DNA of 64,000 bases from Octopus sinensis (lineage: Eukaryota): NCBI RefSeq assembly GCF_006345805.1, contig NC_043021.1:23622001-23686000 (forward strand), given 5' to 3'. Below the pieces are notes generated by a model that had not been told where the DNA came from, ran no database searches, and was given only the letters and a program-made list of their open reading frames with translations. This document shows positions 1 to 39,374 of this stretch, piece by piece. Position numbers and translations under genes: made by a program. Position 1 is the first letter of the stretch. Each line of letters opens with the position of its first letter.

Positions 1-392
1 TCGACTAGTTTTCTCCCCCAATATTTCAAGCTTTGCGCCTGTAATAGAACGACTATTATTATTTTTGTTTTACTCAATAAATACGTAATTCTACTTCAGT
101 TTTCTAATATTCCATACATTAAGTATGTTGACAATCAAATTATCTTTTATTTAACAAGTAGGTGGCAACCCTAACCATTCAGGACACGGCCGTCACTCTG
201 AGAGGTACTTTCAAAATACCCGCATCACCTTCTTTGTTATGGTACATTTCACTGCTACCATAAACCCATCATTTCTCGTTACTTAGATTTATAACGTTTT
301 TATAAGTCAGGCATTATGCACTGACCGAGTGTCTCTGTTTTTCCATTCATCCCTTCACTATTTTTTATAATCAATACATTATCGTATGAGAA

Positions 393-700
393 GGTGCATA
401 GCACAGTGGTTAGAGAGTCGGGCCCACAAGCATGAGGTAGTGAGTTCGACTCCCAGACCGAGGCGTGTGTTGTGTTCTTGTGCAAGACCCTTTATTTCAC
501 GTTCCTACAGTTCACTCAGCTGTAGAAATGAGTTGCGACCTCAGTGGTGCCAAGCTGTATCGGCTTTTCCTTTGGCATGGAAAAAGGAGGCAGGTATGCA
601 TAGCTGACTGCTTATCTTCCATAAACAACCCTGCCCATTCTTGTGCTTTGGGGGGGGGGCAACTTTCTAAGTGCAGACCCATGGTCATTCATGACCGAAG
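393..700 (+). mobile_element. tRNA-derived CORE-type SINE (inverted paralog at about 34130-34387)
   Basis: A box TAGCACAGTGG (399-409), B box GAGTTCGACTC (442-452), followed by a CORE-like TGTGTTCTTGTGCAAGACCC...CAGCTGTAGAAATGAG segment. Confidence 0.75.
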
Positions 701-941
701 GTTTTTTTTTACCCTTCCTTCTACGCGCCATCATTAACTTATCTATTCTTTACTCCGCCAGATTAGAGAGACAAAGAATTGGGGTCTTTGTTATCTACTT
801 GGCCTCCATTCCTCTCAAAATTACTGCTCTTTTGTTAAAAGTAGATAGAATTACTATTCACTCCCCCCAAATAAATAAATAAATAAACAATCCCCCAAAA
901 GTCAATTTTTGCATTCACTAATCACTGTCTAATATTCACAG

Positions 942-1168
942 GGTAAGATCTGGATAAATAGTATCACAAAATGTTTTGTGAAAGAGGCAACAAAAATCTA
1001 CCAACGTCCGTCAATCGATTGTAAAGAAGCTAACAAAATTGTCCTGGACATACAACAAAAATGTTATACAGACAATGATTTCTGTAATGTTGGCTGGAAG
1101 CACCGCAATGATCTGTGGAGAATATTCAGTAAACCCATAACCACGGCCAAAACACAATACTATAAAAT
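942..1168 (+). CDS. STC: Stanniocalcin-like gene, paralog A, exon 3, GKIWINSITKCFVKEATKIYQRPSIDCKEANKIVLDIQQKCYTDNDFCNVGWKHRNDLWRIFSKPITTAKTQYYK (exons 1-2 presumably upstream of the window)
   Basis: Acceptor TTCACAG|GGT, donor AT|GTAAGT, same 227 nt length and same four Cys as paralog B exon 3. Confidence 0.9.
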
Positions 1169-1417
1169 GTAAGTATTTGTTATTTTTGTTATTGTTGTTG
1201 GCGGTGGTGATAGTAATAGAGGAGGTGGTCGTGGTGGTGGTGGTGGTCGTGGTGGTGGTCGTAGTGGTGGTATTCGTGATGATGGTTGCATTGATCGAGT
1301 GAGGGACATCTTGGTGTTGTGGAGGGACATGTAATTGTTGGCGGAGACTCAGTTCAATTTTGCTCGAACATTCAGATGGACGGGTGTCGTTCTGGATATC
1401 AGGATATAACATATGTG

Positions 1418-1825
1418 TGGCTGTGTAGGAAGAAGCTTGCTTCCAAATCACATCGTTCCGGGTTCAGTCCTACTGCATGGCACCTTGGGCAAGTGTCTTC
1501 TTCTACAACCTCGAGCCGACCAAATCCTTGAGTGGATTTGATCGGCAGAACCTGAACGAAGCCCGTCGTTTGTATGTGTGTGTATATGTGTGTGTATGTG
1601 CGAGTGTATGTGTATCTGTGTGTGTTTGTTTCCCGTATCTGTGTTTTCCCAACCACAACGCACGACTACCGGTGTTGGTGTGTATACGTCCGCATGAATT
1701 AGCGGTTCGGCAAAATAGATAGGCTTAAACAATGAGGACTGGTATCGATACTCTCGACTAAAATTCTTCAAGGCGGTGCCACAATATGGCCGCAGCTTAA
1801 ATGAATGAAACAAGTAAAATATTGA
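1418..1825 (+). mobile_element. Abundant tRNA-derived SINE with internal (GT)n; further copies at 9770-10125(+), 24570-24950(-), 33020-33440(-)
   Basis: GTGGCTGTGT..AAG head, GGTTCAGTCC B-box-like motif and CACCTTGGGCAAGTGTCTTC core, repeated four times in the window. Confidence 0.8.
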
Positions 1826-2613
1826 AGATGTCTGTGTCTGGCTGAATAACATGCATTTACTACCCATTCCATCGTGGTGTGACGAATCATTGAGGGATAT
1901 TCTTTGCTGTTACATGTAAAATTCCCTGCTAACCTCTCAAAGCACCACCTTTGAATATTACGATAACAACGGCATGATAAGTCTATATCTACCAAGCAAG
2001 CAAATAAACAATCAACCAAGATAAAACTATGTAACCACTTAAAGCATGATATTTGTAGTGGAGGAAGTATTTTTTCTCTGCAATATTTTCCCAGCTCCTT
2101 TTTCAGTCATAGTGCCTATAGCTAAAGGAATATTTTCTCCATATTTCTATGGATATTGAGCTTTATTAAAGTGTTTTTGTTTTGTTTTTTTTGCTGCTGC
2201 TTTGAACGACAATCCTGTCTTATTTAGGTCGACATTAATCTTGTTTTCCTTTTAGGTAGAGGCAGTCTACGGCATTGTTGATGTAGGCACTTTTTGTACT
2301 AGTCAATATCTTTCAGGCTTTCAGATCAAGGGTTCCGATCTTATAAAACATTCAACCAAGTGGCCGAAATGCTGGAATGCATACTATATTGGTATTGCAA
2401 ATACATTGTGGTTCATTAATTTAACGTATTCAGATTGTTCTGAGATTCATATTTTCTTGTCCGTCTGTTAAATGTTTTAGTTACGCGTTCCCTGTTATAC
2501 AACCATCGTTAGATATGTTTTCATATACCCCAAGGTACCTGTGACATTCTTCATCAGATAGAGCAGTGACATTATTTACGTTATTTACAATTGATGGATA
2601 TTTGTTTGTTGTT

Positions 2614-2659
2614 AACACAACGTTTCGACTGATATGCCCTCCAGCCTTCATCAGGTGTC
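2614..2659 (-). ncRNA. Minimal type I hammerhead ribozyme in a solo pLTR-like repeat
   Basis: GACAC-CUGAUGA-A-GGCUG(GAGGGCAUAU)CAGUC-GAAA-CG-UU-GUGUU: 5-bp stem I, 5-bp stem II, palindromic stem III, GUU triplet. Confidence 0.7.
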
Positions 2660-2817
2660 TGAGGAAAATTTCGAACATGGGTTCTCATTCCTAAGGTGTT
2701 TTTTGATGTTACCATTCTTCTTCTTCTTCTTCTTTTTCTTCTTCTTCTTCTTCTTATTGTTATTATTATTATTATTGTTGTTGTTGTTGTTGTTGTTGTT
2801 GTTATTATTATTATTAA

Positions 2818-2860
<43 letters not shown>

Positions 2861-2861
<1 letters not shown>

Positions 2862-3283
2862 TATATTTGACTTTTGCTTTATATTTGTACAAGTTGGCTC
2901 CAAGTCTCACCCAGAGACCTCAAGAGACAACAGGTTGGAGGTTCATGTTGTTGTTATGCCTAGTGTGCCATATATTTGATTTTTTTGTGGGGGTGTTGTA
3001 CTAGTGAATGTCCAAAAAAAAAACGAAAATTATGTTTGTTTTAAACCTTGCGATTACATAGAAAGTATTTTGCGTAGGATATGAGCAGTTCCCATGAGCA
3101 CTATCTTTTGAATTTCTGCCAATTTTGGATTTCCTGGTATCTGAGTTAGGTAGCAATCATTCCCAGGGCACTTATGACAACAGGTATTGTTTTAGTCTTC
3201 AGGTTCCACATTTTGCTGATTTCTATTTCAAGATCGTTATATTTGCTCAATTTTTGGTAGGTCTTGACAGATACGTTTATATC
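2861..3283 (-). mobile_element. 5'-truncated R4/Dong-type (RLE) non-LTR retrotransposon, 3' end
   Basis: Translates to YQKLSKY.DLEIEI...LGM...KIVLMGTAHILRKILSM, matching 30310-30696. Flanked by (TAA)n arrays on both sides. Confidence 0.8.
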
Positions 3284-3499
<216 letters not shown>

Positions 3500-3519
3500 T
3501 TTAAAAGGATTGACGTAAC

Positions 3520-6210
3520 TCTTCCCAAAGGTAAACAGTCAAGACGAAGAGCGCGATTCGATTGTAAGGTATTTTATTAGTCGAACGATATTTCAACAGT
3601 ATATCTGCCTTTGTCAAGTTCAAAATAAGAAGTGATCAAAATTCAAAATTACAGAAATTTAAGCGTAAAGTATGAACGCGAGCAACCAGCTTACACGCGT
3701 TGATTGAATGACATCATCAGATTTTAAGTTACAATTTTATAACAGGCGAAAAGAAAAAGACAGAAAAAACCAGAAAAAAGAAGACGAAAGAAAAAAAGGA
3801 AAGAAAAAGAGAGAAAGAAGAATATTTAATCAAACAGTTTTGTATAAATTTGATGATATTCTCCTGTCATCTTATTCAACCCTCCAGGGCGTGATATTAA
3901 TAACCCACAAACATATTTCTCCTCATACATTCTGAGAAGTGAAAGTGAAACAGATTGAGACTATTTTCTGAGAATATGCACTTTAAAGTCTTCTTCAAAA
4001 TTGTAGCCGCTTGAAACGAAATGTCAGCAAGTTCTGTCCAACTACAGTTATTGCGCCTGGCGTCGAATCTGTGCCCATTAAACATAAATTGTGTTTCGTG
4101 CATTCTGCAGCGTACAGCAAATGGGAATCTTTACATATTCCACCCTCTGTATAAATCATATCATTTCTGTTATGATTTCTGATGAAATTCACTTCAATCA
4201 TGTTGTTGCACAATGAACAGGGCTTACCTCTCTTGCGACTGTTCTTTAAAGTACAGCGTGCAGATACTCCAATGTTCGTTTTCTTGTAGTCAGATATAGA
4301 GGTCAATAACTCTCTAACATTCTTATTCCGTCTAAAGGCTACAATAGGCAGCTGAGGAAATACCTGTTTGAAACGAGGATATTTTTTTGCCACATGCTGG
4401 TAACTTTCATGCAACACTTTTGAAATGTCAGCGAAATGTCGGTTCCAGCTAATCGCTAAATGAATTCTGTCATCCATTGTATTGTGTTTGCTAAAATTAT
4501 GCTTGTAGATTTACTATCTTTGCTAATCTTAGCTATTTCATTTGCTATTTCCTTTAATCGTGATTCACTGTAACCGCGTTTGACATAATGGCATACAAAA
4601 GCATTTGCATGTTTCCAGTAGTCCCCTATGCCAGTACAAATCCATTTTTTCCTCACAAATTGGGATTTCGGATTTGACCGAATAAGATGATGTGGATGAT
4701 CGGAGCGGCGATGGAGATAAATGTGGGACGACGTGGCTTTGCAAAATAACTGTCACTATTCTGCCTCCAGAAAACTTAACTTTTGGGTTCAAAAAATTCA
4801 ACGCTACTCTTTGAAAAACTAGACGTAAATTTTATGTTGGGCTTAACAGTCACAGAAACGCAAGAAGTCTATTAAACTATCCTGTGATCATTCCCAGACA
4901 AAAAATACGTCGTCAATGAACCGAAACCAGAGTATTGGTTCATGACCATGAAGGAATTTCAATATCTTCAGTAACTGTGTCTCGAATTTCGTCATGAAGA
5001 CATTAGCGAAATTAACTGCCGTGGGGGTGACCATGGCGCAACCCTTCGTCTGGTAGTAAAATCTTTGACTAAACTTCATTGTGTTACTTTCTAACACAAA
5101 CCTCAATAATCTACAGAGAAAATTTGATGGAACACTTTTGTTTGACCGCTCTTCGAAGGCATCCATGCATGCGTCTACCTTTTCATTGTAGTCAATATTA
5201 GGATATAAGGATGAAACATCCATGGTTACCAAAAAAGAGTTCTCAATATGGTCTCGGTGCTTCAAAATAAGTTGATTTCAGATACAAAATCAAAGGTATC
5301 CCGTATATATATGAACTTGATCGTTTTGCGACGGGGAGTAGAAAGCCATCCAGCCAATCCGAAATTTTGGCCGTGCAACATTCATATCCGCTGCAAATTG
5401 AGCGCATTGGATGAAATCTTTCGAACATTTTTGTGTATTTTAGGGAGACCATAATATACAGGTGTTCTTCTTTCTGACCTTAAAATCTTAGATTCAGCCT
5501 TATTAACGAAATTGTTTTCCTCCATTTCCAGAATTATTTTGTCAAGTTCCTCTCTGTAATTGGGGTTTGGATCGACGGGTAATGCCTCATATGAAGTTTT
5601 GTCACTTAAAACTCCTTCAAAATCCGAAATATACTCACTTGTGTCCATAATTACGATAGCACTTCCCTTATCCGCCATGTTAATAACAATAGAATCGTTA
5701 TTAGCTGGACGTCGGAGTGCATAACGTTGGAAATTTGTGAGGTTATTCCAGGACCCTTTTCACTTGACTTTCTCTAATGCTTGCCTGACAAGATTCACGG
5801 AATTCTAGTAATGTCAGTGAACGTCCATCCCGAACATTATCTGGATACCAATTGAGATTCTTTTCAATCCAATTATGCCAGGTTCAATAATCATCATTTT
5901 TATTTTTAGTAAACATAGGGTTTTCTGACTCCTCGTTACCAGCTTTTTAAAAAAATATTCTTTTAGCTTGTGACGCCGGACAAACTGAAATAGCCCTTGA
6001 GCTAGTTTATTCTTGTCGAAATTCTTAGTGCTTGGGCAAAAACTCAGTCCAAGCTCTAACACTGAGACATCATCGGGCGAAAGTTTTAGTTTAGATAAAT
6101 TTATGACCGACTTATTCTCTAGTGTGATGGTTTTTTCTCGGGCAAGTGGTTTTCAGAGCCTTTTTCTCATTAGATTCCTGACTACATTTTGGGCTTTGCT
6201 CGAAATCTTC
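3520..6210 (-). mobile_element. Degenerate Penelope-like element (RT + GIY-YIG) in intron 3 of paralog A
   Basis: Fragmented ORFs with INLS..LELGLSFCP, ADKGSAIVIMD, YGLPKIHK, TMDVSSLYPNI, GCAMVTP, WFRFIDDVF, and CSLC..C..LLYAAEC before a partly deleted GIY-YIG. Many frameshifts. Confidence 0.88.
3581..3623 (-). ncRNA. Minimal hammerhead motif with U3-A8 core in the 3' region of the PLE
   Basis: UUGAAC-UUGACAA-A-GGCAG(AUAUA)CUGUU-GAAA-UA-UC-GUUCGA: stems I and II pair, AUC triplet. Confidence 0.6.
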
Positions 6211-6329
6211 ACTTAAAACACGGAACCTATTGGGTGATAAAATTTGTTGTGAATGTTCACGTGAGAAGTTATAATTTTTAGTCGCCTTTCTAGGGGTAAC
6301 CCATTTCTGGGTGGGTGATAGACAGTGTC

Positions 6330-6890
6330 TTCTGTGGATTTTGTAGACATTTGAAAAACCTTTACTTTCGGGAAAGGAACAAATTTATTGTTTTCGAGGC
6401 AAAATCTTAAATGTGCTCGCATTTTTGACTGATCAAATAGAAACTTCCCTGGAGCGTTTCCAATGACCAGTTCAAATGCATACGCCAGGGTAAAAGGGCC
6501 ACAATCATATGCGCCAACTTGGGGATTAATTATATGAACTTGTTGAATTGTAGGAGTAATGTTTGTTTGTGGTGAATACAACGTTGATTTTGTGCCATTA
6601 GTTCCTGCGAAACTGGCAAATTCAAACTGTCATAAATATAAAAATCTCCTAAAAAATTGGTTGATAAAACAAAATGATTGTTCCTGGTGTGATGAATAAA
6701 CAGTGTGCGGTGTTGATTGTATGTTAGAAATTCCGTGTGATTATTATTCAGGTGCTCCACACAGAAATTGTAGGAGCTGCTTAGAGATATTGCTCGCTCT
6801 TCTGTTGGTGGCTAAAACCATGTCAATGTAGGGAATCGCTTTCGTATTCAGCGAGTATCTGAGGGTCGCAAGTGTCTCGCTTCTTAATCT
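6330..6890 (-). pseudogene. ULP1/C48-like cysteine-protease domain relic, probably transposon-derived (partial inverted copies at 29650-29790 and 31055-31222)
   Basis: NNHFVLS...YIYDSL...PQVGAYDCGPFTLAYAFEL..G..P..F.FDQSKMRAHLRFCLE..F.PFP gives a His-Asp-Gln-Cys arrangement; frameshifted near 6580. Confidence 0.65.
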
Positions 6891-7199
6891 GTACGCTCTG
6901 CCGGAGTTGGGCAACAACAAAAGGGCACGAGGCCACGTGTAATCCCCTGACAAGTGTCTCATCAAATCAGTCCTGAAATGTGGCTTCTTTCTTCTGATAA
7001 AAAAACGAGTCCACCAGTCAAATCTACTTGATTCTCTTAGTGTAAGATTTGTTGCAATATAGAAAGCAGGTTCCCTACAGTCGCTTTCGCCTTTTCTTGC
7101 TTCTGAAATTGGTATTTTCCCACCTCTTTGCAGAGTTGAATTTGCCTCCAGATTCAAACTGAGTTAGCATTAGACAATAAAAGAAAACTCTGTTACTCT

Positions 7200-7306
<107 letters not shown>

Positions 7307-7417
7307 TGTCTGTCTATCTATCAGTTTGTCTGATGTCTGCCTATTTGAGTGTGTTTGTCTGAGTGTTATTGACTGAGTGTGTTTGATTAAGACACCAATA
7401 TATTTTTTATATTGCAG

Positions 7418-7547
7418 AATGTGGAAAAATTTTGCCAAGATATCGTCAAAATGCAGTACGCCATCTGCTCAGAAATTAATACCATGGATCAAAGCCCACT
7501 TCGACGCTAGCGATGATTTGGCAACCCTGTGGAAGAAATTACATTAA
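7418..7547 (+). CDS. STC: Stanniocalcin-like gene, paralog A, exon 4 (terminal), (I)MWKNFAKISSKCSTPSAQKLIPWIKAHFDASDDLATLWKKLH*
   Basis: Acceptor TATTTTTTATATTGCAG|A, phase-compatible with exon 3 (AT+A), conserved KC.TPSA..L.PWIKAH, TAA at 7545-7547. Confidence 0.85.
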
Positions 7548-7623
7548 CGTACCTAGTTACTGGGAAGAATTCAAGATTTACTGACTTGTCGGACTTTGGA
7601 CTTGGTTATTTAGTATAGCTACC

Positions 7624-7711
<88 letters not shown>

Positions 7712-7864
7712 GTAATAAATGGGAACTGTTTCATTAGTGCAGTATATACTTGTAATTGTGTACATGTATGCACAAACAATACTAGCTTCCATATAGTTAT
7801 ATCTCCTATATTATTCATACATACATACGTACAAATATACATACATACATACATATATGTATAC

Positions 7865-7916
<52 letters not shown>

Positions 7917-8149
7917 GTATGAGTGTATATATATATGTGTATGTATTTGTATATATATATGTATATGTCTTCACACACACATACACACATATATATATAT
8001 ATATATATATAAAAGCAATTAAGATTCAAGTAACTTCCAATGAATTTACTTGAATTTATCTGCAACAATTTTTGCAACTTGTAATAAAGCCTGTCTTTGT
8101 ATGAAACAATTGTACTAAAAACCAATCCATTCTTGTTGCTTCTTTCTCG

Positions 8150-8218
<69 letters not shown>

Positions 8219-8220
<2 letters not shown>

Positions 8221-8430
8221 CGGGAAGCTTTATGAAAATAAACTAAAGACGACGGCAGGTGGAATACAAACAAACAATTGTATTAGTATGGCGCTCAGGA
8301 ATATAAATAAAACACGTCTTTTACGTTTCGAGCCTACGCTCTTCAACAGAAAGATACACAGAAAACAAACACGGAGAGAAACAAGGAGAGAAAAAAATGC
8401 GTGCAGAAGCTAGTGAATCAACATGGCGAT
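8219..8430 (-). mobile_element. Short (~210 bp) hammerhead-carrying non-autonomous element within (TA)n; second copy at about 53790-53990
   Basis: Two diverged copies share GGCGCTCAG/ACGCTCAG, TTTCGAGCCTACGCTCTT and GGAGAGAAA motifs; absent from the duplicated right arm. Confidence 0.65.
8317..8354 (-). ncRNA. Minimal hammerhead motif with CUGUUGA (U6) core
   Basis: UCUUU-CUGUUGA-A-GAGC(GUAG)GCUC-GAAA-CG-UA-AAAGA. Confidence 0.6.
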
Positions 8431-8454
8431 CTCTCTCTCTCTCTCTCTCTCTCT

Positions 8455-8511
<57 letters not shown>

Positions 8512-8925
8512 TGTATGTATGCATGCATGTATATTGGTATATCCAAGCAAGGAGGAACATGCACATATGGAAAGTATCTTAACTATCTGTAGAATAAAAA
8601 ATAACCAATTAATGATTATGAGAAATAAAGTTTGATGCCACTTCTGCTAGATCATTGCTATTTTTACTGTTATCATTGTTTGTGTTTCCTTGTTTAACCC
8701 CAGGGCAGCCTCGAAACAGTGTTAACTGACGTTTCAACCGTAACCATCATAAAATGTTTTGTCTTTAAATAGACATTTTCTGGTGGGCGTATTCTTCAAA
8801 TACTTTGTTTCTACAACAACAACATTTACCATTATTGGAGAACTGTATTTCAAGTGTTCACATGAAGTGAAAATATTTTTCTCATTGTGAGAAATATAGT
8901 TTGGTGACTATCCTGCCACCGAAAG

Positions 8926-9500
8926 TTGTTCGCTTCAGCCTCATCAACCCAAAAAAGATTAAAAAGCAAAAAGGCGGGCAACAATAGTTGCCCGCCAAAT
9001 GACCCTAAGGCTTCTGGAGGTGGTGTAGAGACTCCGGACAAAGCGGAAGAGCTCCATTCTCCCGAAGTCAGGAAGAAAAAAAAAAGAAAGAAGAACGGGT
9101 CATTGCAGGAGGGAGATGATGTGCCGTCTGCATGTCCCGACGTTTTGCCACCCACGGTGGAAGAAACGACCGTCACCCTTAAAGATAATGTACTAATTAT
9201 CTTTTTCTACAAGGGCGGGGAGGTGGAAAAAGTAGTCGAAGAACATAAAGAGACAGTAGATATGCCCTTCACACAGGATTCCGAATGGCCTCCGCAGATA
9301 GCTGTGGAGGTCATAAGGTTTCCCTTATGGGAAAGGCTTAAAGGATATTAGGAGGAGTTTCGTATATGGTGGGTTGGATATTACACGACCCAGATGTCCT
9401 TCATGAAATGGCGGGATACAGGAACTCAAGCAGCATTGAAGATGGTGATGAATATATCGATGAGTATGAGGTGGAAAAGCCTCGTGAGAGGGTTTGAAAC
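8926..9500 (+). pseudogene. Left copy of a gag/ORF1-like relic downstream of paralog A (zinc-knuckle segment deleted)
   Basis: Reverse complement of 25266-25810; in-frame TAG at 9349-9351; lacks about 160 bp present in the right copy. Confidence 0.45.
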
Positions 9501-10139
9501 CTCATTTTATTGTATTATTTGTAGTGGTTTATAACTTCAATTGTGTGTTTTTCATAAAAAATCAGGTTAAGTAAGAGGTTTTAGTGCCTCCTTGTAAGAG
9601 GTTTGAAATCTCATATTGATTTTAAAAAAAAAGAAAATATGTTTCCGAGAAAAATCCAATCGGCGGGTGTTGGGCCTCGTCTCTCATTTATTCATTTTAT
9701 TTCATTTTCATTCCTTAATGTGTTTGTCCAGCCCAGAAAGCTACCCAATCTTTGTACTTTTATTAAATAAAGTAGCTTGCTTACGAACCACTTGGGCAAG
9801 TGTCTTCTACTATAGCCTCGGGCCGACCAAAGCCTTGTGAGTGGATTTGGTAGACGGAAACTGAAAGAAGCCGTATATATATGTGTATATGTATGTGTGT
9901 GTGTTTATGTGTATTGTGTTTGTCCCCCAAACATCGCCTGACAACCGATGGTGGTGTGTTTGCGTCCCCATAACTTCGCGGTTCTGTAAAAGAGACCTAT
10001 AGAATAAGTACTAGGCTTACAAAGAATAAGTCCTGGGGTGGATTTGCTCGACTAAAGGTGGTGCTCCAGCATGGCCACAGTCAAATGACTGAAACAAGTA
10101 AATGAGTAAAAAGAGTAAAAGAGTACTACAAGTATGAAA

Positions 10140-10445
10140 ACGACAACAGCAATACTCCTTTCTACCATAGGCACAAGGTCTGGATCTTGTGGGGAGGGTC
10201 ACACGCGATCACATCGACCACAATACACAACTGGTACTTAATTTATCGACACGGGATAGATGAAAGGCAAAGTCGACCTCGGCATGATTTGAACTCAGAA
10301 CGTAGTGACAGACGAAATACCTCTTTGTTTACAACCCACATGGGGCTAAACACAGAAGGGACAAACAAGGACAGACAAACGGATTAAGTCGATCACATCG
10401 ACTGTAGTGCGTAACTGGTACTTAATTTATCGACCCCGAAAACTG
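10140..10445 (-). mobile_element. tRNA-derived SINE of a second family (compound); copies at 20098-20330(+), 22040-22430(+, degenerate), 37995-38057(-, head only)
   Basis: Shared GGCGGCGAGCTGG head, GAGTTCAAATTCC B box, GTCGATAAATTAAGTACCAGTT body and TCTGTGTTTAGCC tail. Confidence 0.8.
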
Positions 10446-11040
10446 AAGAAATTTAGTCGAACGAATCGATTCCAGTACTTATTTTTAAAGCTTCGTATTT
10501 CTTCCAACGGTCCATTTTGCCGAACCACTAAGTTTCGCCAAACCGCTAAGTTACGGGCGTTTAGTCACAACTACATCGGATTTCAAGTGGTAGTGGGAGG
10601 CAAACAGGTACATCACACACCCACAAACCCACACATCGAAATTCCTTCTGTTTTCATCTACTAAATCCCCTCACAAGATTTTGCCTTATTGGATTTTCAA
10701 AGCATAAAACTAATAATAGCACATATTTAAGTACTGTGTATGTTTATAGAAAATCATAATTTTTTTGTTTTTTGGAATGCTGCATCTCAAAGCAGAGACC
10801 CTATCAAAAATAGCAACGAAATATTGGGTTACTTCCATCATTCATTCACTGTCCCGTCACTGTCTCTCACATAATACCCTTTCTCTGCTACCTCTAATTC
10901 ATCACTCTTAGCACTGCCTTTTCCATCTTTCTTTGATGGATTCGAGACTATAGAAGAAGACATTTGCCCAAAGTACCACGCCCTGGGAATGAACGCACAA
11001 CCATGTGGTTGGGAAAGAGACTTCTTACCACGCAGCTAAA

Positions 11041-11330
11041 TAGTGTGAAGGTTTGTGGTCTAGTAGTGAGAGTATTGCACTCACAATTGCGAGATTGTGG
11101 TTTCGATTCCCAGCGTACTGAAATCTAAATGAATAATCCTGCGATGGACAGGCGTTCCGTTCGAGGGGAATGTTGGCCTGCCTCTCAAACCAGTGAGACA
11201 GTATATTTCAAAAGCTAGAGCCATGCGATGCGCATTGTGACCAGCGGTGTACAATAACATCTGATAATCTGGTCGATACCGCGATGCTGTGATATATAAA
11301 ACATATATAAAAGTATAACTATAGCGATCA
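11041..11330 (+). mobile_element. Degenerate tRNA-derived SINE
   Basis: TGTGGTCTAGTAG A-box-like and GGTTTCGATTCC B-box-like motifs. Confidence 0.5.
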
Positions 11331-11595
11331 TTAAACTTATAAACTGTGTCTTCTTTAATGAAGAAACCTTTCATTAGAACATGGACAAGTATAACTAATC
11401 ACCAAATCACCTTATCACCAAATCCAGAACAGCGTCTGTTTCAATATTAGACAGCAAATTAGGTGTTTTGTGATGCTATTAGCTGTAACAGAACAAAATC
11501 AAGTGTGTGGACTTCAAAAGTACACCCCTACCATCGATGTGGCAGTTCGCTGCTGATTGTCAGCGACCCCAGTCGTCCTTGATCTCCTCCTTGGC

Positions 11596-11626
<31 letters not shown>

Positions 11627-11636
11627 TATATGTGTG

Positions 11637-11669
<33 letters not shown>

Positions 11670-11674
11670 CCATG

Positions 11675-11724
<50 letters not shown>

Positions 11725-11920
11725 CATACAAAAATCATTGAACAAGCAAATACAAAGTCAACCGCATGTCATTTCATAATTCGAACATTTAATTATAGAA
11801 TAAACATATAACCCGCAAGATGGAACAAAATTCATATGTACAGCACGTAATAATAATAATATGGTATGGTGCGAGAAAAATTCTTATCATTAAAACTTAG
11901 AATTAATATTCTAGCGATTC

Positions 11921-13633
11921 AAAGAGAAAACACTTGTCTCCTATAATGAGAATGAATGGCAAAGAGCCGACTCAGAAAATTTCTTTGATATTACCATGGG
12001 GTCATCAGATTCTGCGCAGGTGACTGACTTGGTTGGCCTGTATCTACTCTCGGAAGTTTGGAAAAGCTTCCCTAACCTTACTGGTGGATTATATAGGGAT
12101 GATGCCCTCTTTGCCGTGCGGGGCCTCTCTAAGACCGAATTAAACAGATTAAAGAAGTCGTTGAGAAGCTTCTCGAAAGATTTTTTAAATCTTGATATCA
12201 TCTACGACAGTAACTCTAGGGTAGTAAACTTCTTGGACGTTACCTTGTGTCTTAATACCGGTCTATACTATCCCTTTCGTAAGGCTAATAAATCGATAGT
12301 ATATATCAATGTGTCATCCAATCATCCGAAATCCACAATAGATAGTATCATAACTGCGATTTCAACTAGAATATCCAATTTATCTGCGAACGAAGAGATT
12401 TTTGAGCAACATGCACCAGTGTATAATAATGCCCTAAGTTTAAGTGGTTTCAAGTCTAAAATATTCTATATCCTTAATACTAGACTAAAAAACAGAATGG
12501 CTGGTTTGCCAATTGAGCAAGTTGCAATTACTACAGATAAATACAATAATAAATACTGTAATAATAATAGGTTTTTGAATAATAATTATTATAATAATAA
12601 TAATACGTCTAGGAATAATAAGAGGCCTTTAAATAATAATAATAATATGTTTAGGAATAATAATATGTTTAGGGATAACAGCAGTAAGGGTAGGTATAAG
12701 GAAATTAAAAATCCTGATAAGAAGTTAAACAAAACAGGAAGCTCACGGCCTAGAATAAGGGAAGTTATTTGGTTCGCTCCCCCTTTCTCCCTTAGAGTAA
12801 GGAATTTACCAAAACTATTTTTTAAGATTCTGAAGGAGAACTTCCCAAAGGACCACAAATATTATAGCATCTGCAATAAGTCGACAATAAAATTCTCCTA
12901 TTCTGTAATGCCTAACTTTGCTTCCATCATTGCTTCAATCAATAGAAGCAAGCTTACTAGGTGGAACGACAGAAAAAGTACCTTTGAGGATGACCAAGGA
13001 AATGTGGTTGATAATCCTGTAAAGCTGAGTACCAAAGCTATAAATGGTCTACCTTTACCGGACTCATCGAACCCATGTAATAAGGGTAGTTTAGAGGGAA
13101 GGAATGAGCGAAACCCGTCTGGAACAGGAGATAAAATAAGTAAAGATAATAATAGGAAAAAAATTAGGAAAAGCCCCGAAAAGACATGTAACTGTAGGAA
13201 ACCCAAATTATGTCCTTTGGGTGGTTCATGTCTGGTTACCAACGTAATATATAAATGTGTAGTTAAGGATGTAGATAATCTAAACAAATTTTATATAGGT
13301 AATACGATGGATTTTAAGGCGCGATATAGGTCACACATGAGCTCTTTTACTAACGAAAAATACTTTAACTCAACTACACTTGCATCGCATATACACAACC
13401 TGAGAAAGAACAATAAGAATTATTTCCTAGAATGGTCCATCATTTCTAAAATCCCAAACTTCAAGAGAAATATCAGCAAGTGTAGGCTTTGCATAAGGGA
13501 ATCACTTACCATCCTTAGGTGTTATGGACCGCACATTCTGAATAAATTTACGGACGCGATCCCCTTTTGCGTACATAAATTTTCTTCTACATTCCTGAAA
13601 ATCTACAGGAATAAAATAAATTGTAGTAAGTAA
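11921..13633 (+). CDS. Naiad PLE protein, C-terminal part of RT + CxCx5C linker + GIY-YIG endonuclease
   Basis: FFDITMGSSD, GLYRDDAL, NFLDVTL, YINVSSNHP, CNCRKPKLCPLGGSC, VIYKC..FYIGNT, KCRLC. No internal stop from about 11921 to 13633. Confidence 0.9.
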   Translation, partial: KEKTLVSYNENEWQRADSENFFDITMGSSDSAQVTDLVGLYLLSEVWKSFPNLTGGLYRDDALFAVRGLSKTELNRLKKSLRSFSKDFLNLDIIYDSNSRVVNFLDVTLCLNTGLYYPFRKANKSIVYINVSSNHPKSTIDSIITAISTRISNLSANEEIFEQHAPVYNNALSLSGFKSKIFYILNTRLKNRMAGLPIEQVAITTDKYNNKYCNNNRFLNNNYYNNNNTSRNNKRPLNNNNNMFRNNNMFRDNSSKGRYKEIKNPDKKLNKTGSSRPRIREVIWFAPPFSLRVRNLPKLFFKILKENFPKDHKYYSICNKSTIKFSYSVMPNFASIIASINRSKLTRWNDRKSTFEDDQGNVVDNPVKLSTKAINGLPLPDSSNPCNKGSLEGRNERNPSGTGDKISKDNNRKKIRKSPEKTCNCRKPKLCPLGGSCLVTNVIYKCVVKDVDNLNKFYIGNTMDFKARYRSHMSSFTNEKYFNSTTLASHIHNLRKNNKNYFLEWSIISKIPNFKRNISKCRLCIRESLTILRCYGPHILNKFTDAIPFCVHKFSSTFLKIYRNKINCSK

Positions 13634-14241
13634 TGGATTTACGAAAAGATAAGTTGTAAAAAAATAAAAATAACTGGTTTAGATATTGCAGGATTTGAAA
13701 CCTCGAAGGCTCAATTTAATTTAATTTAATTTTAACCCAATTAATTCAGTTTAATTTAGTTAAGTAAACCCATTCTTTTTGAGTATATAGAAAGTAAATA
13801 AATTGAAAAATAAAAGTATTTAAGTTTTGCAGGATTTGAAACCACGGAGGCTCATTTTAAGTCAATTTAGTTCAATTCTAATTAATTGGAATTAATTTGA
13901 TTTGAAATTTTTTTTTTTTTTACCGCTTCCTCTACTGCTTTAAAAGAAAAAAATTCTTCACTGCTTTGTCTTTTGGGCTATCTGTGCATGAATACCCAGT
14001 CTGTGTTTGTCATTTTGCTGTTTATTACCGGTTTGTGAATTTAACTATTGTTGCTTTGTTTTACATATTGTGTATTTTGGGTAAAAACTGTCAGTAGCCT
14101 TCGCGCGAAGGCTACGTATTTAATTCCCCCCTGCGGGGGAATTGTTTTGAAACAATTGTTGTGAAACAGTTTAAAACATACACAAAAGGCCTGTGAAGCC
14201 AAAATTTTTGAAGGCTTGTCAAAGCCAATTGAAAAGGCTTG

Positions 14242-15499
14242 TAAAGCCACATCTAGAGATGGAGACTCCTATCTCATACTCACCTGTATCAGGTGAAGAA
14301 AGTTCACCGGCGGTGACGCCAGAAAAAGAAGAGGCCCCAGCGAAGAAGTTCGCAGAAGTTGCAGGAAAAAAACAAAAGAAAATCAACACAGATAAGAGCA
14401 ACTTAGAAAAGTATGAAGCACTTTTGAAAAAGGAAGGAAATGAAATAGCAGTGGAATCAGACGTCAGAAAGAAAGAAGAAGTAGAAAAAAAAGGATTATC
14501 TACAAGACATACAATACAACGATGAAAAGCATTCAAAGAGTGGAGGAAAAAAAAAATAGAGGATTGTCTGAAGACAATAAGGAAAGACATTACGTATATA
14601 AACCGTGGCAGAAAGTTTGGAACAGTTGACGTGAGGTTTAGGACTGAGGAGATAGCCAAGAAGCTATCGACCGAACCTCAAAAAGCGGAGAATATAGTCC
14701 TTCTTCCCCTGTACAGAGGCAGAAGGACCTCAAAAATATTAATGAAAAATATTCCGCCAGAGGCGGACGCCACGTGCCTGGTGGCGGCAGTGATGTTGGG
14801 CCTAGAGGACAAGATCACTATCCTCCAGGCTACAGTAGAGGAGGAGGGGTTTTGGCAATTCAGGCGGAGGTCCAAACATTAGAAGAAATAACGGAGATAT
14901 TGAGGCTCAGCGAGGAGGAGAGGGTGCTAGTGTTTATGGAGGGCAGAAAGCCGAGGTGCTTCGGCTGTGGTAAAAAGGGGCACGTAAGAGCGGAGTGCCA
15001 ACCTAAACCGCAGGAAGCAGCACCGCCGGAAAAAGAAAAAACAGAAGAGAAAACAGAAGAGAAAACACCAGAAACTACAGAAACCAAAGAGGCAGCAGAA
15101 GCAACAAGTGGCGAAGAAAAGGAAAAAGAGGAGGGGTGGTCAAAAATTACCAAAAAAAAACGGAAAACAGAAACCACCCCTCAGAAGGAGAACCAAAAAA
15201 AGAGGAAAGAAGCGACTAATACATTTATGGCCATTAAGGCTACCAACAACAGGCTAGTTAATGTTTTGGCAGCCATGGCCAAAGTGGAAAAAATGAAAAA
15301 AACAAAAGACTGTATTGTTTATAAGATAGGCCGGAAGGATTACGGACGGATAAAATCCGAATTCTTTCACGACGTGGGCCCTCTGAGATTGGACATATCT
15401 CCATATTTATACGAGGGTCTGCGTCGGACTCCCCCACGAGCCAAGGAAAAAAATAAAAGCGAAGAAGACGACGAAAAACAAGTCGAACCACTGATATAA
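14242..15499 (+). CDS. LINE A ORF1 (RRM-like region + CCHC knuckle CFGCGKKGHVRAEC), two frameshifts
   Basis: Three overlapping frames (14193-14525, 14631-14882, 14774-15499), homologous to LINE B ORF1. Confidence 0.75.
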
Positions 15500-15507
15500 G
15501 GTAAGCT

Positions 15508-18500
15508 ATGGATTGCATTTATGTTAGTTGTTTAAATGTGCGCGGCCTGGGATCAAGCGGGAAGCAAGGTCGCTTCCTTAATGATATCAGGTCGCGTAAT
15601 TTGGATGTTATTGTTGCTACAGAAACCCGGTTAAAGGGGCCAAGTGGTCTACTCCCGCTGTTTGACGGCTACGAGAGTTTTTTCTCTCCGGCCAGTCCTA
15701 CAGGCGGGGGTGGGGTGTTGGTCCTATTAAAAAGAAAGCGGGTTTTTGAGAAAAAGTTAATTTTTTCAGACCCAGAAGGTAGGATGGTCGTCATGGATTT
15801 GACGTTCAGTAACGGTAAAGTTATCAGACTGGTTGCAATTTACGCACCCAACCATACAGGGCAAAGTGATTATTTTCGTGAACTAGAAAACTTTCTTGGT
15901 ACTTCACATTCATTAGTTGTGCTGGGAGACTTTAACACAATTTGCAAAGCGGATGTAGATTGTGTTGGCTCGCGTTCAGATAGAAAAGGTAACAGTGGCT
16001 TCATGGATCTGCTAAGCCGCTTTGAGCTAGCAGATCCTTATAGGTTGGAATTTCCGAACGCTCCATTGTGGACATGGTCAAACAGCGACGGATCTTCCAG
16101 GTCATACATAGATAGGATACTAATTAGAAAAGTAGACAGAAAAATAGCTAAGTGTCCACAGTTTTACATGGTCAGCTACAGTGATCATAAAATGGTCATC
16201 TGTAAGCTTGACATAGATAAGGTTAAAAATAGAGGCTCCGGTTACTGGAAACTTAATACGTCCCTTTTGGCGATTAAGGAGTACAGAGACCGGATTAGGA
16301 CTATAATTCAGAGGGCGCTGTCTGGTGCCATCATTAATAACAAATGGTGGTATGCCCTCAAGCGAGCCATCAAATTCGAGTCAATTAGATATAGCATAGG
16401 ATTAGTGGCTAGAGAGGCTAGGAGGGAATCTACTCTAGTTAAGGAATTAGAGGAAGCCTTGAAAACTGGCTCTGCGGTTCAGGTGGCGGCCAAGAGACTG
16501 GCGTTAAACCAGCACCTCGAGGCCAAACACATGGGCTGCATAGTCAGGGCTAGGATCCGCGCAATGGGTTGTGAAGGAATCAACGCCGTGAGATGGGCCC
16601 GAGTGGTGGAAGCTCAGCGTGGTAACGACGCCACGATTCGATCTATGACGAACCAACAAGGTGAGTTGATAAACGAGCCCGAGGAGATGTGTGAGGCCTT
16701 TCAGGAGCACTTCGCTCAGCTTTTCGGTGAATGCGGCGGACTGGACAGGAGGAGGACCTTTACGGACCTCCTCGACGGTCTTCCGCGCTTATCGGGGCGA
16801 GATGCGGAGGGCTGTGAAGGGCCAATCACGCCTGGGGAGGTGGTTGAGGCGATGGCGGACTGCGGCGCGGGCAAAGCGCCGGGTTTAGATGGTCTACCCT
16901 ACGAGTTATATAAGAGTATGCCAGACTTGTTCGGGCACCTACTGGTGGAGGTCTATGCGAACTGGCAGCAGAACGGGTTCATACCCAGATCTGTGCGCCG
17001 GGGAGTAGTGACACTCGTCAGAAAGGACCCGAGCAAGGGAGAGTGCATTGATAATTTTAGGCCCATCACTCTGCTAAACACAGAGTTGAAGATTTTGGCC
17101 AAAGTGTTATCGAAAAGATTGGCGCGTGTCGCGGATGGTCTGATCGGGGAGGCACAGACATGTGCCGTTCCCAGCAGAACCATTCAGGATAATCTCCATC
17201 TTATGCGGTACACTATAGAGGGGTTTAATAGTGATTCTGGCAAGGGTGGGGCACTGGTCCATTTAGACCAATCTAAAGCGTTCGATAGGGTCGACCATCG
17301 CTACCTGGTATCTGCCCTGGCACAGTTCGGGCTGGGCCTTGGCTTCCTCAGGTGGATTATCCAAATTTACGACAACATCGACATTGGTAGTTCGGGTGAA
17401 CGGCTTCTTGTCGAAGCCGTTCAGCATCAAGCGCTCGGTTCGTCAAGGGTGTCCGCTCTCCCCGCTTTTGTACGTGATGGCTCTTGAGCCATTACTGCGA
17501 AAACTGAGCGGCATCCCGAGACAGCCAGGTAGTGGAAAATCGGTGTCAGCGTACGCGGATGACATCACCATCATCGTAACCGAAATGGATCACCTACGTA
17601 AAGTAGGCAAGGCCATAGAGGTTTACGAGACGGTGACAGGAGCAAAAGTTAATCGCGAAAAGTCAGTCGGCTTGCAACTCGGCACCTGGAGAGGCAAGTC
17701 GATGCCTCCTGACAGCGTCGTGGGACGTTGGGCGGAGGGTCCGATTAAGTTGCTAGGGGTTTGGTTCGGTCCAGACCTCCAAATAGAGAAGAATTGGGGC
17801 GAGGTATCGAGCAGGGTGGCTGCAGTAACCAAGACCTGGTCTTGGCGGTGGCTATCCCTGAAAGGGAAGGCGGAGGTAGCCAATGTGTTTATCGCATCGG
17901 TTATCACCTACCGCCTTTCCGTCGTTCCTTGCCCTGATTCGTGGTTGATCAAGTTGGAAAGACAGCTCTTCTACTTCTTGTGGAAGGGCGGGAAACCACT
18001 TGTGAAACGCTCTACTTGCTGTCAACAACCTTTAAAGGGTGGGCTAGGGATGCCTTGGCTGATGATGCGCAGACATGCGCTGAGGTTAAGACATCTGTGG
18101 CTCTACCTGGATGGTGAACGGGTGTGGTCTCCGCTAGCAAAACTGATGTTTCCCAAGTTCACTAGTTTCGGTGGATGGGAAACCTGGCTGAATCGTAGAT
18201 CGAAACTAGGCACATGGTACACGGAGTGTCGCAAGGCTCTCCTGCTATTCCGTCGCTCGGGCAATGCCTGCGGTGGGGGTTCCACCACATTCTTCTATAG
18301 AGGGTTGGTAGAGGCGGAATGTGAAGATACCTTGGGGGAAACCCTGGGTCTCGACGATAATCAGCTGGCCAGTCTGTTCCGACGTACGTTCGAGCCGAAG
18401 ACACTGGACAACTTCCAGAAGTCTCTGGCATGGCAATGCTACAGAGGAGCTCTACCTGTTCGGGATAAACTCGCAAGGCACGGTGGCCAAGACAGTCCGA

Positions 18501-24478: not shown

Positions 24479-25265
24479 GTGATCGCCTGTGACCCTCCCC
24501 ACAAAATCCAGACCTTGTGCCTATGGTAGAAAGGAGTATTGCTGTTGTCGTTTTCATACTTGTAGTACTCTTTTACTCTTTTTACTCATTTACTTGTTTC
24601 AGTCATTTGACTGTGGCCATGCTGGAGCACCACCTTTAGTCGAGCAAATCCACCCCAGGACTTATTCTTTGTAAGCCTAGTACTTATTCTACCGGTCTCT
24701 TTTACCGACCGCTAAGTTACGGGGATGCAAACACACCACCATCGGTTGTCAGGCGATGTTTGGGGGACAAACACAAAACACATAAACACACACACACATA
24801 CATATACACATATATATACGACGGGCTTCTTTCAGTTTCCGTCTACCTCACAAGGCTTTGGTCGGCCCGAGGCTATAGTAGAAGACACTTGCCCAAGGTG
24901 CCACGCAGTGGGACTGAACCCGGAACCATGTGGTTCGTAAGCAAGCTACTTTATTTCATAAAATTTGTCATATAGACAGTACAAAGATTGGGTAGCTTTG
25001 CGGGCTGGACAAACTCATTAAGGAATGAAAATGAAATAAAATGAATAAATGAGAGACGAGACCCAACACCCGCCGATTGGATTTTTCTCGGAAACATATT
25101 TTCTTTTTTTAAAAATCAATATGAGATTTCAAACCTCTTACAAGGAGGCACTAAAACCTCTTACTTAACCTGTTTTTTTTTTTTATGAAAAGCACACAAT
25201 TGAAGTTATAAACCACTACAGATAATACAATAAGATGAGGTTTCAAACCCTCTCACGTGGCTTTT

Positions 25266-26857: not shown

Positions 26858-26904
<47 letters not shown>

Positions 26905-26909
<5 letters not shown>

Positions 26910-28693
26910 CGAGAAAGAAGCAACAAGAATGGATAGGTTTTTAGTACAATCGTTTCATACAAGGACAGGCTTTATTAAAAGTTGCAAAGATTGCAGCATA
27001 TAAACGTGTCCCGTACTCATCAGCTAAAATACATGTGAGTTCTCTAGACATACTAGTGGTTGAGGCTATACTCATGAAGTAATGTAGATAATTAAGTAAC
27101 ATAAACAGATTTACAAAGTTCATTAAAGTTCTTTAAAGATGATGTACAGTCTTATCACAGAATTTTAAAAAAGTTTTAATAGCATCACAGAGAAGGTGAC
27201 CTAATCCATAGTGCACATATGAATTTCCAGAGATATGAGGAGGGATTACATACTCACAGACGACAAATTTATCCATTGTTAATCACAACGAGGTGGGTCT
27301 CAATTCCTGCTTATTAGCATTACAGAGAGGGTGAATTAATCCTTTGTATAGATGCACAATTTCCAATGGTGTAGATGTAAATTTCCAGAGAAATGAAGAG
27401 GAATTTCATATTCACAGGCGATAAATTTATCAATGGTTGAACACAATGAGGTAGGTATCAATTCTTGTTATATGATTAGGTATTTGCCACATTAATCACA
27501 TTACTGCTATTTACAAGAGGCTGTAGCTATTTAACTTTTAAAGGCTGAAGGGCTTTCTAGAGATGCAAAGAACAGAAAAGGGAAGGGAAGAGAAGAAAAG
27601 AGAGAAAATAAAGGAGGAGGGAGCAAAAGGGGGGGGACTAAAAGAGAAGAGAAAAGGAAAAAGAGAATAAGAAGAAGAAAAAGAAAAAAACAGAGATAAC
27701 ACGGTCTTTAGATTCTCTTTAAATTCATAGCTGCTTTCAACAGCAATAAATTAGCTGTTTTACTGGTCAAAGAATAATATTCTCCTCTAGTTCCTAGATG
27801 CCTGTAAATTAAAACCAGACTTGCCGTCTACTAATTCTTCTGTATAACTAGAACCCTCTTTTTTTCTTTTTCTTTTTTCCCTTCTTTCCCTATTTCTTTC
27901 TCTTTTCTCTTTTTTCTTTTTCTTCTTCTTATTCTCTTTTTCCTTTTCTCTTCTCTTTTAGTCCCCCCCCTTTTGCTCCCTCCTCCTTTATTTTCTCTCT
28001 TTTCTTCTCTTCCCTTCCCTTTTCTGTTCTTTGCCTCTCTAGAAAGCCCTTCAGCCTTTAAAAGTTAAATAGCTACAGCCTCTTGTAAATAGCAGTAATG
28101 TGATTAATGTGGCAAATACCTAATCATATAACAAGAATTGATACCTACCTCATTGTGTTCAACCATTGATAAATTTATCGCCTGTGAATATGAAATTCCT
28201 CTTCATTTCTCTGGAAATTTACATCTACACCATTGGAAATTGTGCATCTATACAAAGGATTAATTCACCCTCTCTGTAATGCTAATAAGCAGGAATTGAG
28301 ACCCACCTCGTTGTGATTAACAATGGATAAATTTGTCGTCTGTGAGTATGTAATCCCTCCTCATATCTCTGGAAATTCATATGTGCACTATGGATCAGGT
28401 CACCTTCTCTGTGATGCTATTAAAACTTTTTTAAAATTCTGTGATAAGACTGTACATCATCTTTAAAGAACTTTAATGAACTTTGGAAATCTGTTTATGT
28501 TACTTAATTATCTACATTACTTCATGAGTATAGCCTCAACCACTAGGATGTCTAGAGAACTCACATGTATTTTAGCTGATGAGTACGGGACACGTTTATA
28601 TGCTGTAATTTTTGCAACTTTTAATAAAGCCTGTCCTTGTATGAAACGATTGTACTAAAAACCTATCCATTCTTGTTGCTTCTTTCTCGCTTA
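26905..28693. repeat. ~1.8 kb fold-back: ~790-bp inverted arms (26905-27689 / 27910-28693) with a ~220-bp spacer; probably a PLE 3' end plus inverted pLTR
   Basis: Arms are near-identical by eye. The right arm contains LYIIFK (Naiad C-terminal-like) and a decayed CTGATGA at 28576. Confidence 0.85.
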
Positions 28694-29128
28694 TAATCAC
28701 CCCACATTACTGTATTGTTAAAACAGTATAGTTTTTTTTGGTGCATCTAAGTTAGGTACCATATTCAAGTAAATTCATTTAAATTAACTTGAATCTTTAT
28801 TGCTTTTTGTATATATATATATATATATTACAAGCGTATGTATGTATGAATATATACATGTATGTACATTTATATATATATATATGTATATAATACATAC
28901 ATACTCATATGTATATAATACATACATACATATTTGTATATATATATATATTTATATATATTTATATATATATGTATGTATGTATATATATGCATATATG
29001 CCTGTATGTATGTATAAATAATATAGGAGGTATAACTATATGGAAGCTAGTATTGTTTGTGTATACATGTACATGATTACAAGTACATACGGCACTAATG
29101 AAACAGTCCCCATTTATTATTATTATTA

Positions 29129-31790: not shown

Positions 31791-32515
31791 ATTATTATTA
31801 TTGAGTGAGAGAGCAGTTCATGCCAACAAAGTGACACTGGGGTAAAATATACGAAGCCCAATATACCCATCATGACTACCCGTCTGATAAGGGTACACCA
31901 GGCACATGCATCACAACCATATGTGCGCGACATGGTGATCTCATATCAAGATAAACAGCACATGACCTTGCAGGTGGGGCCCAGTTAGAATTTTCTTCAG
32001 ATTGAGTAGCCCATCCCGCTCAAAAGGTCCCTGAAGAAGGGTTGTTTAAGGATGTTGAAAGAACCACCCATGTTTCCAGAGGTGAATTATTCAAACCCCA
32101 AAGAATCCCTCTCAACACATGGCTATGATGCTCCCCCACTATTCCTGCTCATGATCAGAGATGCACGTATCGTCAGCCACTAAGGGACATGCTCAACTGG
32201 TTACGGTTAATCAACTAACAAGCAAATCTGTGGTATTGAGCAGAATATTTGCTGTAGCCCTTCTTATATTTGCTGTAGCCCTTCTTATATTTGCTGTAGC
32301 CCTTCTTATATTTGCTGTAGCCCTTCTTATATTTGCTGTAGCCCTTCTTATATTTGCTGTAGCCCTTCTTATATTTGCTGTAGCCCTTCTTATATTTGCT
32401 GTAGCCCTTCTTATATTTGCTGTAGCCCTTCTTTTATTTGCTGTAGCCCTTCTTATATTTGCTGTAGCCCTTCTTATATTTGCTGTAGCCCTTCTTATAT
32501 TTGCTGTAGCCCTTC

Positions 32516-32517
<2 letters not shown>
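31791..32517 (-). mobile_element. Non-coding retroposed element with (AAT)n tail and a 13x21-bp tandem array at its 5' end
   Basis: Unit ATATTTGCTGTAGCCCTTCTT x13 (32245-32517); trinucleotide arrays on both sides. Confidence 0.55.
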
Positions 32518-32560
<43 letters not shown>

Positions 32561-38405: not shown

Positions 38406-38497
38406 CTGAAAAATGGAGAAAAGAAAAAAAGTAGGATGTTGTTCTTGTTGTTATTGTTGTATTAGAGGTTACTTCTAAAGCGGCGCTGATCAAACAT

Positions 38498-39230: not shown

Positions 39231-39374
39231 ACCATTATTTCATAGCTAAGGCAACAAAACTATGTAGCATATAGAAGCGAAGACCCAAACTTCTGAATGG
39301 TGTTGGGTGGTGTGCGACAAACACACACAAACACACGCACGCACACACACACATACACATACACATACATAAAC

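Follow-up and report, generated by a model that had tools for sequence, protein, structure and literature searches.

In a 64,000-nucleotide stretch of the Octopus sinensis genome (the window, to which all coordinates refer unless another locus is named), two stanniocalcin-like (STC-like) genes, A and B, share an exon 3 that has diverged mainly by amino acid changes and is followed directly by a nearly identical intron. The question that this raises is whether the contrast reflects positive selection on the exon, a divergence maintained by selection, as a sequence-only reading of the window offered as its alternative, or a difference in the ages of adjoining segments of DNA. The features on which the answer depends are as follows.

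100-34556: large inverted duplication holding genes A and B tail-to-tail, with arms at ~100-11935 and 34556-19559, recovered by self-BLAST and as a collinear chain
100-941, plus strand: old segment of intron 2 in gene A, corresponding to gene B 34556-33883
942-1168, plus strand: gene A exon 3, 75 codons plus 2 nt
975-995, plus strand: first variable patch of gene A exon 3, codons 12-18
1011-1073, plus strand: second variable patch, codons 24-44
1128-1157, plus strand: third variable patch, codons 63-72
1169-2178, plus strand: young segment of intron 3 in gene A, homogenised with gene B 33655-32657 (2.5% divergence)
7418-7547, plus strand: gene A exon 4 with its stop codon, absent from the NCBI model
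54162-54057, minus strand: gene B exon 1, with start codon and signal peptide, 2-8.5% divergence among paralogs
38406-39274, minus strand: 3' part of gene B intron 1, 98-99% identical in four genes, with sequences grouping by species
38405-38248, minus strand: gene B exon 2, its first ~50 nt conserved in all copies and the other ~107 nt hypervariable
33882-33656, minus strand: gene B exon 3
29397-29286, minus strand: gene B exon 4 with its stop codon

Positions 1-11172 of the window match O. sinensis CM016883.1 (GCA_006345805.1, from 23,622,001 onwards) with 100% identity. Gene A is O. sinensis LOC118767949, its exon 3 being 100% identical to residues 89-164 of the annotated protein (P0031), and its exons 1 and 2 lie outside the window, to the left. 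Gene B is unannotated; it is a complete four-exon open reading frame of 200 amino acids on the minus strand, and protein searches returned no matching annotated protein. Current NCBI models of these STC-like genes are truncated or fused. The LOC118767949 protein (164 aa) ends in 'YYKM*' (1166-1172) because the model reads through the exon-3 donor, and the canonical open exon 4 sits 6.2 kb downstream; two O. bimaculoides models, P0001 and P0032, are likewise cut short, and in XP_052832787 (333 aa) two adjacent copies have been fused. An open reading frame at 2256-2468, which has a good acceptor, was rejected as exon 4 of gene A, being in the wrong phase (with an immediate stop) and without a counterpart in the arm of gene B. 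The spacer between the duplication arms is packed with retroelement open reading frames, among them, within 11915-16998, a reverse transcriptase-like frame of 572 aa (11915-13630) and gag-like and endonuclease-like frames (14648-16998).

The assignment to the stanniocalcin family, proposed from the sequence-only reading, is borne out at the levels of profile and fold. The genes match the Pfam Stanniocalcin family PF03298 at about 38.6 bits (gene B 38.7, gene A 38.5; cutoff 23), the exon-3 peptides by themselves reach 23.4 and 27.1 bits, and a family profile matches human STC2 structures with E=5e-13. An AF2 model of moderate quality (pLDDT 73) consists entirely of helices, and in a Foldseek search of the PDB the top four matches are STC2 chains (probability 1.00, TM 0.47-0.58), the remaining matches being noise. 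The ten cysteines of gene B (C41, 50, 55, 62, 75, 99, 115, 129, 136 and 177) align to cysteines of human STC2 (7y5q_C), and all ten are invariant in genes A and B (hereafter sinA and sinB) and in the syntenic O. vulgaris copies vulA (P0029, locus L002) and vulB (P0030, locus L003). A tblastn search with an approximate human STC1 sequence matched only exon 3; the 75-aa exon-3 peptide gave no matches in a word-indexed protein search, despite the existence of an identical annotated protein, a full-length query and a representative search succeeded, and a protein search with the family profile added only distant or fragmentary matches.

Vertebrate STC1 and STC2 are inhibitors of PAPP-A, encoded by one or two conserved hormone genes, and C211 of STC2 is an extra cysteine that serves a disulfide-linked homodimer. 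The octopus proteins share with them the PF03298 match, the ten aligned cysteines, a coding-exon count of four and the predicted helical fold, but are only 16-19% identical, have a short C-terminus, lack counterparts of C211 and C120, and are encoded by many clustered copies with omega (dN/dS) at or above 1. An eleventh cysteine of any kind is absent from sinA, sinB, vulA and vulB, which suggests that these proteins form monomers or non-covalent dimers. At least eight STC-like loci are named in octopus genomes, including LOC118767948-50 and LOC115224535 in O. sinensis/O. vulgaris and LOC106876188-90, LOC128250800 and LOC128250809 in O. bimaculoides; octopus genomes also carry a homologue of more conventional type, represented by an Argonauta protein named after LOC115215717. 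O. vulgaris locus L002 carries a further Stanniocalcin-family gene (65874-68571 of that locus) with a 184-aa product, which starts ~7 kb downstream of vulA, and its exon 1 has no counterpart at the matching place in the window.

Exon 3 is open in sinA and sinB, with AG/GT splice sites and identical acceptor and donor contexts. The sequence-only counts proved exact: 44 of 225 nucleotides and 28 of 75 codons (by amino acid) differ, four conserved codons (1, 5, 17 and 42) carry a synonymous change only, and eight substitutions fall in codons 63-72; the four cysteines, the three tryptophans and the CNVGWKHRN block are likewise invariant as described. Several codons have two or three changes each. 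The near-identity of the intron after the donor is also real, with ~180 bp identical (A ~1273-1453, B 33577-33397) and 24 mismatches in 979 aligned sites over 1169-2174 (p=0.025), as is the strong divergence of exon 4, which amounts to 25% plus one in-frame 18-nt indel. The contrast is, however, one-sided, since only the downstream intron is near-identical and the upstream intron is diverged like the exon: intron 2 just upstream (544-941) differs at p=0.164 with seven indel events, exon 3 differs at p=0.194, the two are not distinguishable (Fisher p=0.38), and each departs from the intron-3 divergence with p<1e-17.

These values bear on the simplest explanation of the contrast, a recent duplication dated by intron 3 and followed by fast adaptive point substitutions within exon 3. 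The 44 exon differences beside an intron diverged by 2.5%, the codons with two or three changes and a family-wide omega above 1 (see below) would all fit, but intron 2 is as diverged as exon 3, dS in exon 3 (0.26) exceeds the intron-3 divergence tenfold, the topology switches inside exon 3, and patches of these types are found again at other loci and in O. bimaculoides, so that we regard this course of events as very improbable. Because of the tenfold excess of dS, intron 3 is younger than the exon, a conversion tract and not a neutral yardstick for it; within gene clusters generally, a near-identical intron beside a diverged exon should not be read as a neutral yardstick.

Comparison with O. 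vulgaris reveals the composition of the exon. In intron 2, sinA and vulA are ~97% identical, and they do not differ in the first 35 nt of exon 3; divergence over exon 3 is 20% overall and ~25% past those 35 nt, with ~3% in the flanking intron. In a four-way alignment of intron 2 and exon 3 the quartet-informative sites, coded O for grouping by synteny, X for sinA with vulB and S for grouping by species, read OOOOOOOOOOSOOOOOXXXXXXXSSSXXS; these form seven runs, a number as low as this being found in 1 of 200000 permutations (p ~5e-6). Three of the topology switches lie inside exon 3, at 1014-1025, 1072-1109 and 1129-1141; in this exon sinA is the same as vulB over 994-1056 and 1136-1160 and the same as sinB over 1098-1135, and codons 12-18 are present in four versions in the four genes. 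The variable patches extend beyond these two species: 29 of 35 residues of the exon-2 patch in sinB are shared with O. bimaculoides LOC106876188 and only 15 of 35 with the syntenic vulB, and in the exon-3 patch at residues 112-132 sinA and vulB agree at 19 of 21 positions, each of them agreeing with O. bimaculoides LOC106876189 at 15 of 21. Since patch types recur in other loci and in O. bimaculoides, these are old types moving between loci and not changes made in place. Exon 3 has been pieced together by recombination from several old sequence types, and the supposition that two paralogs diverged in situ is not upheld.

These comparisons draw on a single assembly per species, within which alleles and paralogs are not separable, and the cluster is rich in repeats, circumstances that would suit an inverted 'paralog' that is really a misplaced haplotype. 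The likelihood of such an assembly artefact is close to negligible, as long stretches of the arms differ by 16-25%, the transposons inserted in them are not the same, and O. vulgaris has a separate syntenic counterpart of each copy.

The introns have a history of their own. The ~870 nt upstream of exon 2, together with the first 50 nt of that exon, are 98-99% identical in the four genes, each of the 19 informative sites upstream of exon 2 is of the species type, and further upstream there is species-specific sequence common to both paralogs of each species. Within exon 2, identity is at least 98% up to position +50 and gives way to 20-35% divergence in six of six pairs, and the intron downstream of exon 2 returns to syntenic grouping (16 of 17 sites). 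For intron 3, a three-taxon count finds vulB to be the odd one at 28 sites, sinB at 9 and sinA at 8, and vulA is without the tract altogether. Introns group by species, which points to gene conversion after speciation, and the variable exons do not. The near-identical intron 3 is a gene-conversion tract of at least 1 kb, formed on the O. sinensis branch once O. vulgaris had separated. Its end lies within ~10 nt of the exon-3 donor, and a second, independent tract end lies inside exon 2 in both species; in both exon 2 and exon 3 the conversion tracts thus end where they meet a variable coding patch. Part of intron 2 has also escaped homogenisation, and the escape is therefore not strictly exon-specific. 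The intron-3 homology breaks at A 2178 and B 32657, with vulB matching gene A to ~2574, and a 21-bp satellite (~14 copies, 32245-32522) with a SINE-like piece occupies 32214-32657 at this break. The ~870-nt intron-1 block (38406-39274) does not recur as a dispersed repeat among the sequences compared; gene conversion alone could have produced it, or it could be a regulatory element that has been conserved.

The test proposed for positive selection, a codon-based dN/dS, gives different answers at different scales. For the exon-3 pair on which the sequence-only reading had placed it, positive selection is not supported: NG86 gives dN 0.220, dS 0.258 and omega 0.85, and maximum likelihood gives omega 0.98 with 2dlnL 0.00 against omega=1. 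Over the mature region, pairwise NG86 omega is 0.97-1.40. Codon models (our own implementation; four genes of two sister species, 163 codons, one tree and a uniform synonymous rate) yield a single omega (M0) of 1.73-1.80 under five codon-frequency models, with 2dlnL of 6.6-7.9 against omega=1 (p 0.005-0.01), and a similar value is obtained with the presumed young parts left out. The site model M2a improves on M1a by 2dlnL 31-36 on all three topologies, placing ~40% of sites at omega ~4.5-5 and ~25% at omega 0, with 26 sites at posterior > 0.9, although recombination, multi-nucleotide changes, synonymous-rate heterogeneity and the mosaic of young and old segments can inflate codon tests, M2a most of all. 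Exon 3 alone, in the four genes, has an omega of 1.4-1.6 that is not significant, and exon 4 alone has ~3.7 (p ~0.01-0.02). The codon test is thus positive across the four genes, at omega ~1.8, and close to 1 for the focal pair and for exon 3 by itself.

A pairwise omega of 0.85-1.0 and an exon divergence at the level of intron 2 would also be expected if one or both copies were functionless and drifting, the patchy identity arising by chance conversion between inverted repeats, and the NCBI models that end after exon 3 could be taken the same way. Constraint on the coding sequence nonetheless makes this decidedly unlikely. Complete open reading frames, splice sites, all ten cysteines and only in-frame indels are found in four of four genes from two species; the exons are without frameshifts against seven indel events in 428 intron columns (probability of zero indels 0.024), and in neutral simulations of exon 3 the probability of no stop codon with all seven cysteine and tryptophan residues kept is 0.0036. 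Moreover, omega of the mature region is significantly above 1 and not equal to it, and exon 1, encoding the signal peptide, is under purifying selection and more conserved than its flanks. The description of a secreted, cysteine-rich scaffold, with a signal-peptide exon and ten cysteines in intact genes, accordingly stands, and the evolution of this family is clearly not hormone-like, a departure that had been remarked on as unexpected for a conserved hormone.

Conversion could also be limited by a mismatch barrier without any selection: tracts could not enter DNA that is more than 15% diverged, old patches would persist passively, and the omega above 1 would be an artefact produced by recombination and multi-nucleotide changes. 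The equally diverged part of intron 2 fits this account, as do the sensitivity of site-model tests to recombination and synonymous-rate heterogeneity and the lack of significance of exon 3 alone. We consider it unlikely, though the least so of the alternatives without selection, as it leaves unexplained that, in both species and at two independent tract ends, the old DNA falls on patches coding for the mature peptide, that the single omega, averaged over all sites including the invariant ones, exceeds 1 under all five frequency models, and that the scaffold is strictly conserved.

The reading that we favour, to which we give a probability of roughly two in three, is that of an octopus-specific STC-like cluster evolving by patchwork gene conversion, with the diversity of the variable patches maintained or selected. 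It builds on what was observed: a mosaic, introns that evolve in concert, intact genes and an omega above 1 across four genes. The genes would encode secreted proteins of ~200 aa with ten cysteines and a predicted helical-bundle fold. Within each species, non-allelic conversion would repeatedly even out the introns, the exon for the signal peptide and the conserved stretches with which exons 2 and 3 open, and the last two thirds of exon 2, the three patches of exon 3 and exon 4 would stay old and different or be swapped as cassettes. The step from 19% to 2.5% at the junction of exon 3 and intron 3 would then be the end of one conversion tract, with exon 3 and the intron upstream of it being old DNA. 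The patches change at or above the neutral rate while the cysteine and tryptophan scaffold and the reading frames are kept, and the diversity in the variable patches is therefore most likely favoured by selection; we infer that the conversion tracts are halted by selection and not just by a mismatch barrier. The earlier alternative of selectively maintained divergence fits best with introns homogenised per species and tracts ending at the edges of variable patches. If this reading is true, the cluster is a clean genomic case of a hormone scaffold turned into a fast-diversifying secreted family in cephalopods, in which gene conversion acts both as the homogeniser of introns and scaffold and as the shuffler of variable cassettes.

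Interlocus conversion also keeps introns alike while functional coding patches differ at the MHC class I and class II loci and in the primate L/M opsins. The octopus genes resemble these in their homogenised introns, their differing patches and the sequence types common to several species, and they differ in belonging to another protein family and in that allelic and paralogous parts are here inseparable. A more specific form of diversification, like that of the MHC, in which ancient cassettes are kept across species and shuffled among clustered paralogs by short-tract conversion, in a recruited family of secreted and possibly venom proteins, is a tentative proposal that we hold well short of even odds; the same conversion process would keep the introns, the signal peptide and the scaffold uniform. 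If true, it would amount to an inbuilt mechanism for producing diverse toxins or ligands.

Conotoxins, snake PLA2 and three-finger toxins combine a conserved signal exon and conserved introns with a hypervariable mature region. The octopus family is similar in its conserved signal exon, cysteine scaffold, mature-region omega above 1 and local arrays, but unlike these toxins much of its contrast between exon and intron derives from gene conversion, and one intron is as diverged as the exon. By these analogies the family behaves like a diversifying secreted family of toxin or immune type, the toxin role being putative here. Stanniocalcin-like 'doppelganger toxins' (SF5) have been described from cephalopod posterior salivary glands, and SF5 members of O. 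bimaculoides and H. maculosa are highly expressed in that gland (bioRxiv 10.64898/2026.02.02.703354). This preprint is the only paper linking stanniocalcin and cephalopods that a search of a collection of PMC and bioRxiv papers found. Genes A and B are likened to the SF5 toxins by family and not by sequence identity, as octopus secreted stanniocalcin-like proteins. The main text of the preprint makes no mention of positive or diversifying selection or of the arrangement of SF5 genes (bioRxiv 10.64898/2026.02.02.703354), and the gene cluster, the mosaic and the pattern of selection described here are absent from that text. If our reading holds, the proposed STC-like venom components gain a gene-level context from them, comprising a cluster, an omega above 1 and patches common to species.

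For functional work the analysis indicates ~26 candidate target-contact residues, and the variable sites were related to STC2 by secondary-structure positions and alignment. The patches span residues 57-81, 101-106, 116-127, 148-160 and 167-194. In the human PAPP-A-STC2 structure the contact residues include V63 and K104 (PMC9579167), and these align to conserved blocks of the octopus proteins. STC2 111-116, to which the hypervariable octopus patch at residues 101-106 aligns, lies shortly ahead of the tethering Cys120, a residue that the octopus proteins lack; the position of this patch relative to the PAPP-A tether is a lead only, drawn from the alignment.

Several repeats accompany the genes. 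Just downstream of gene B is a 786-bp inverted repeat with 99.2% identity (26904-27689 and 27910-28695), and upstream of its exon 1 is a direct repeat of ~79% identity (55546-57930 and 61717-63999), a doubled structure that is also present at O. vulgaris locus L003. Intron copies of tRNA-like or SINE-like repeats are located at 380-480, 1430-1625, 9791-10000, 24767-24951 and 34300-34400, and such scattered repeats account for some of the off-diagonal matches in the self-comparison of the window.
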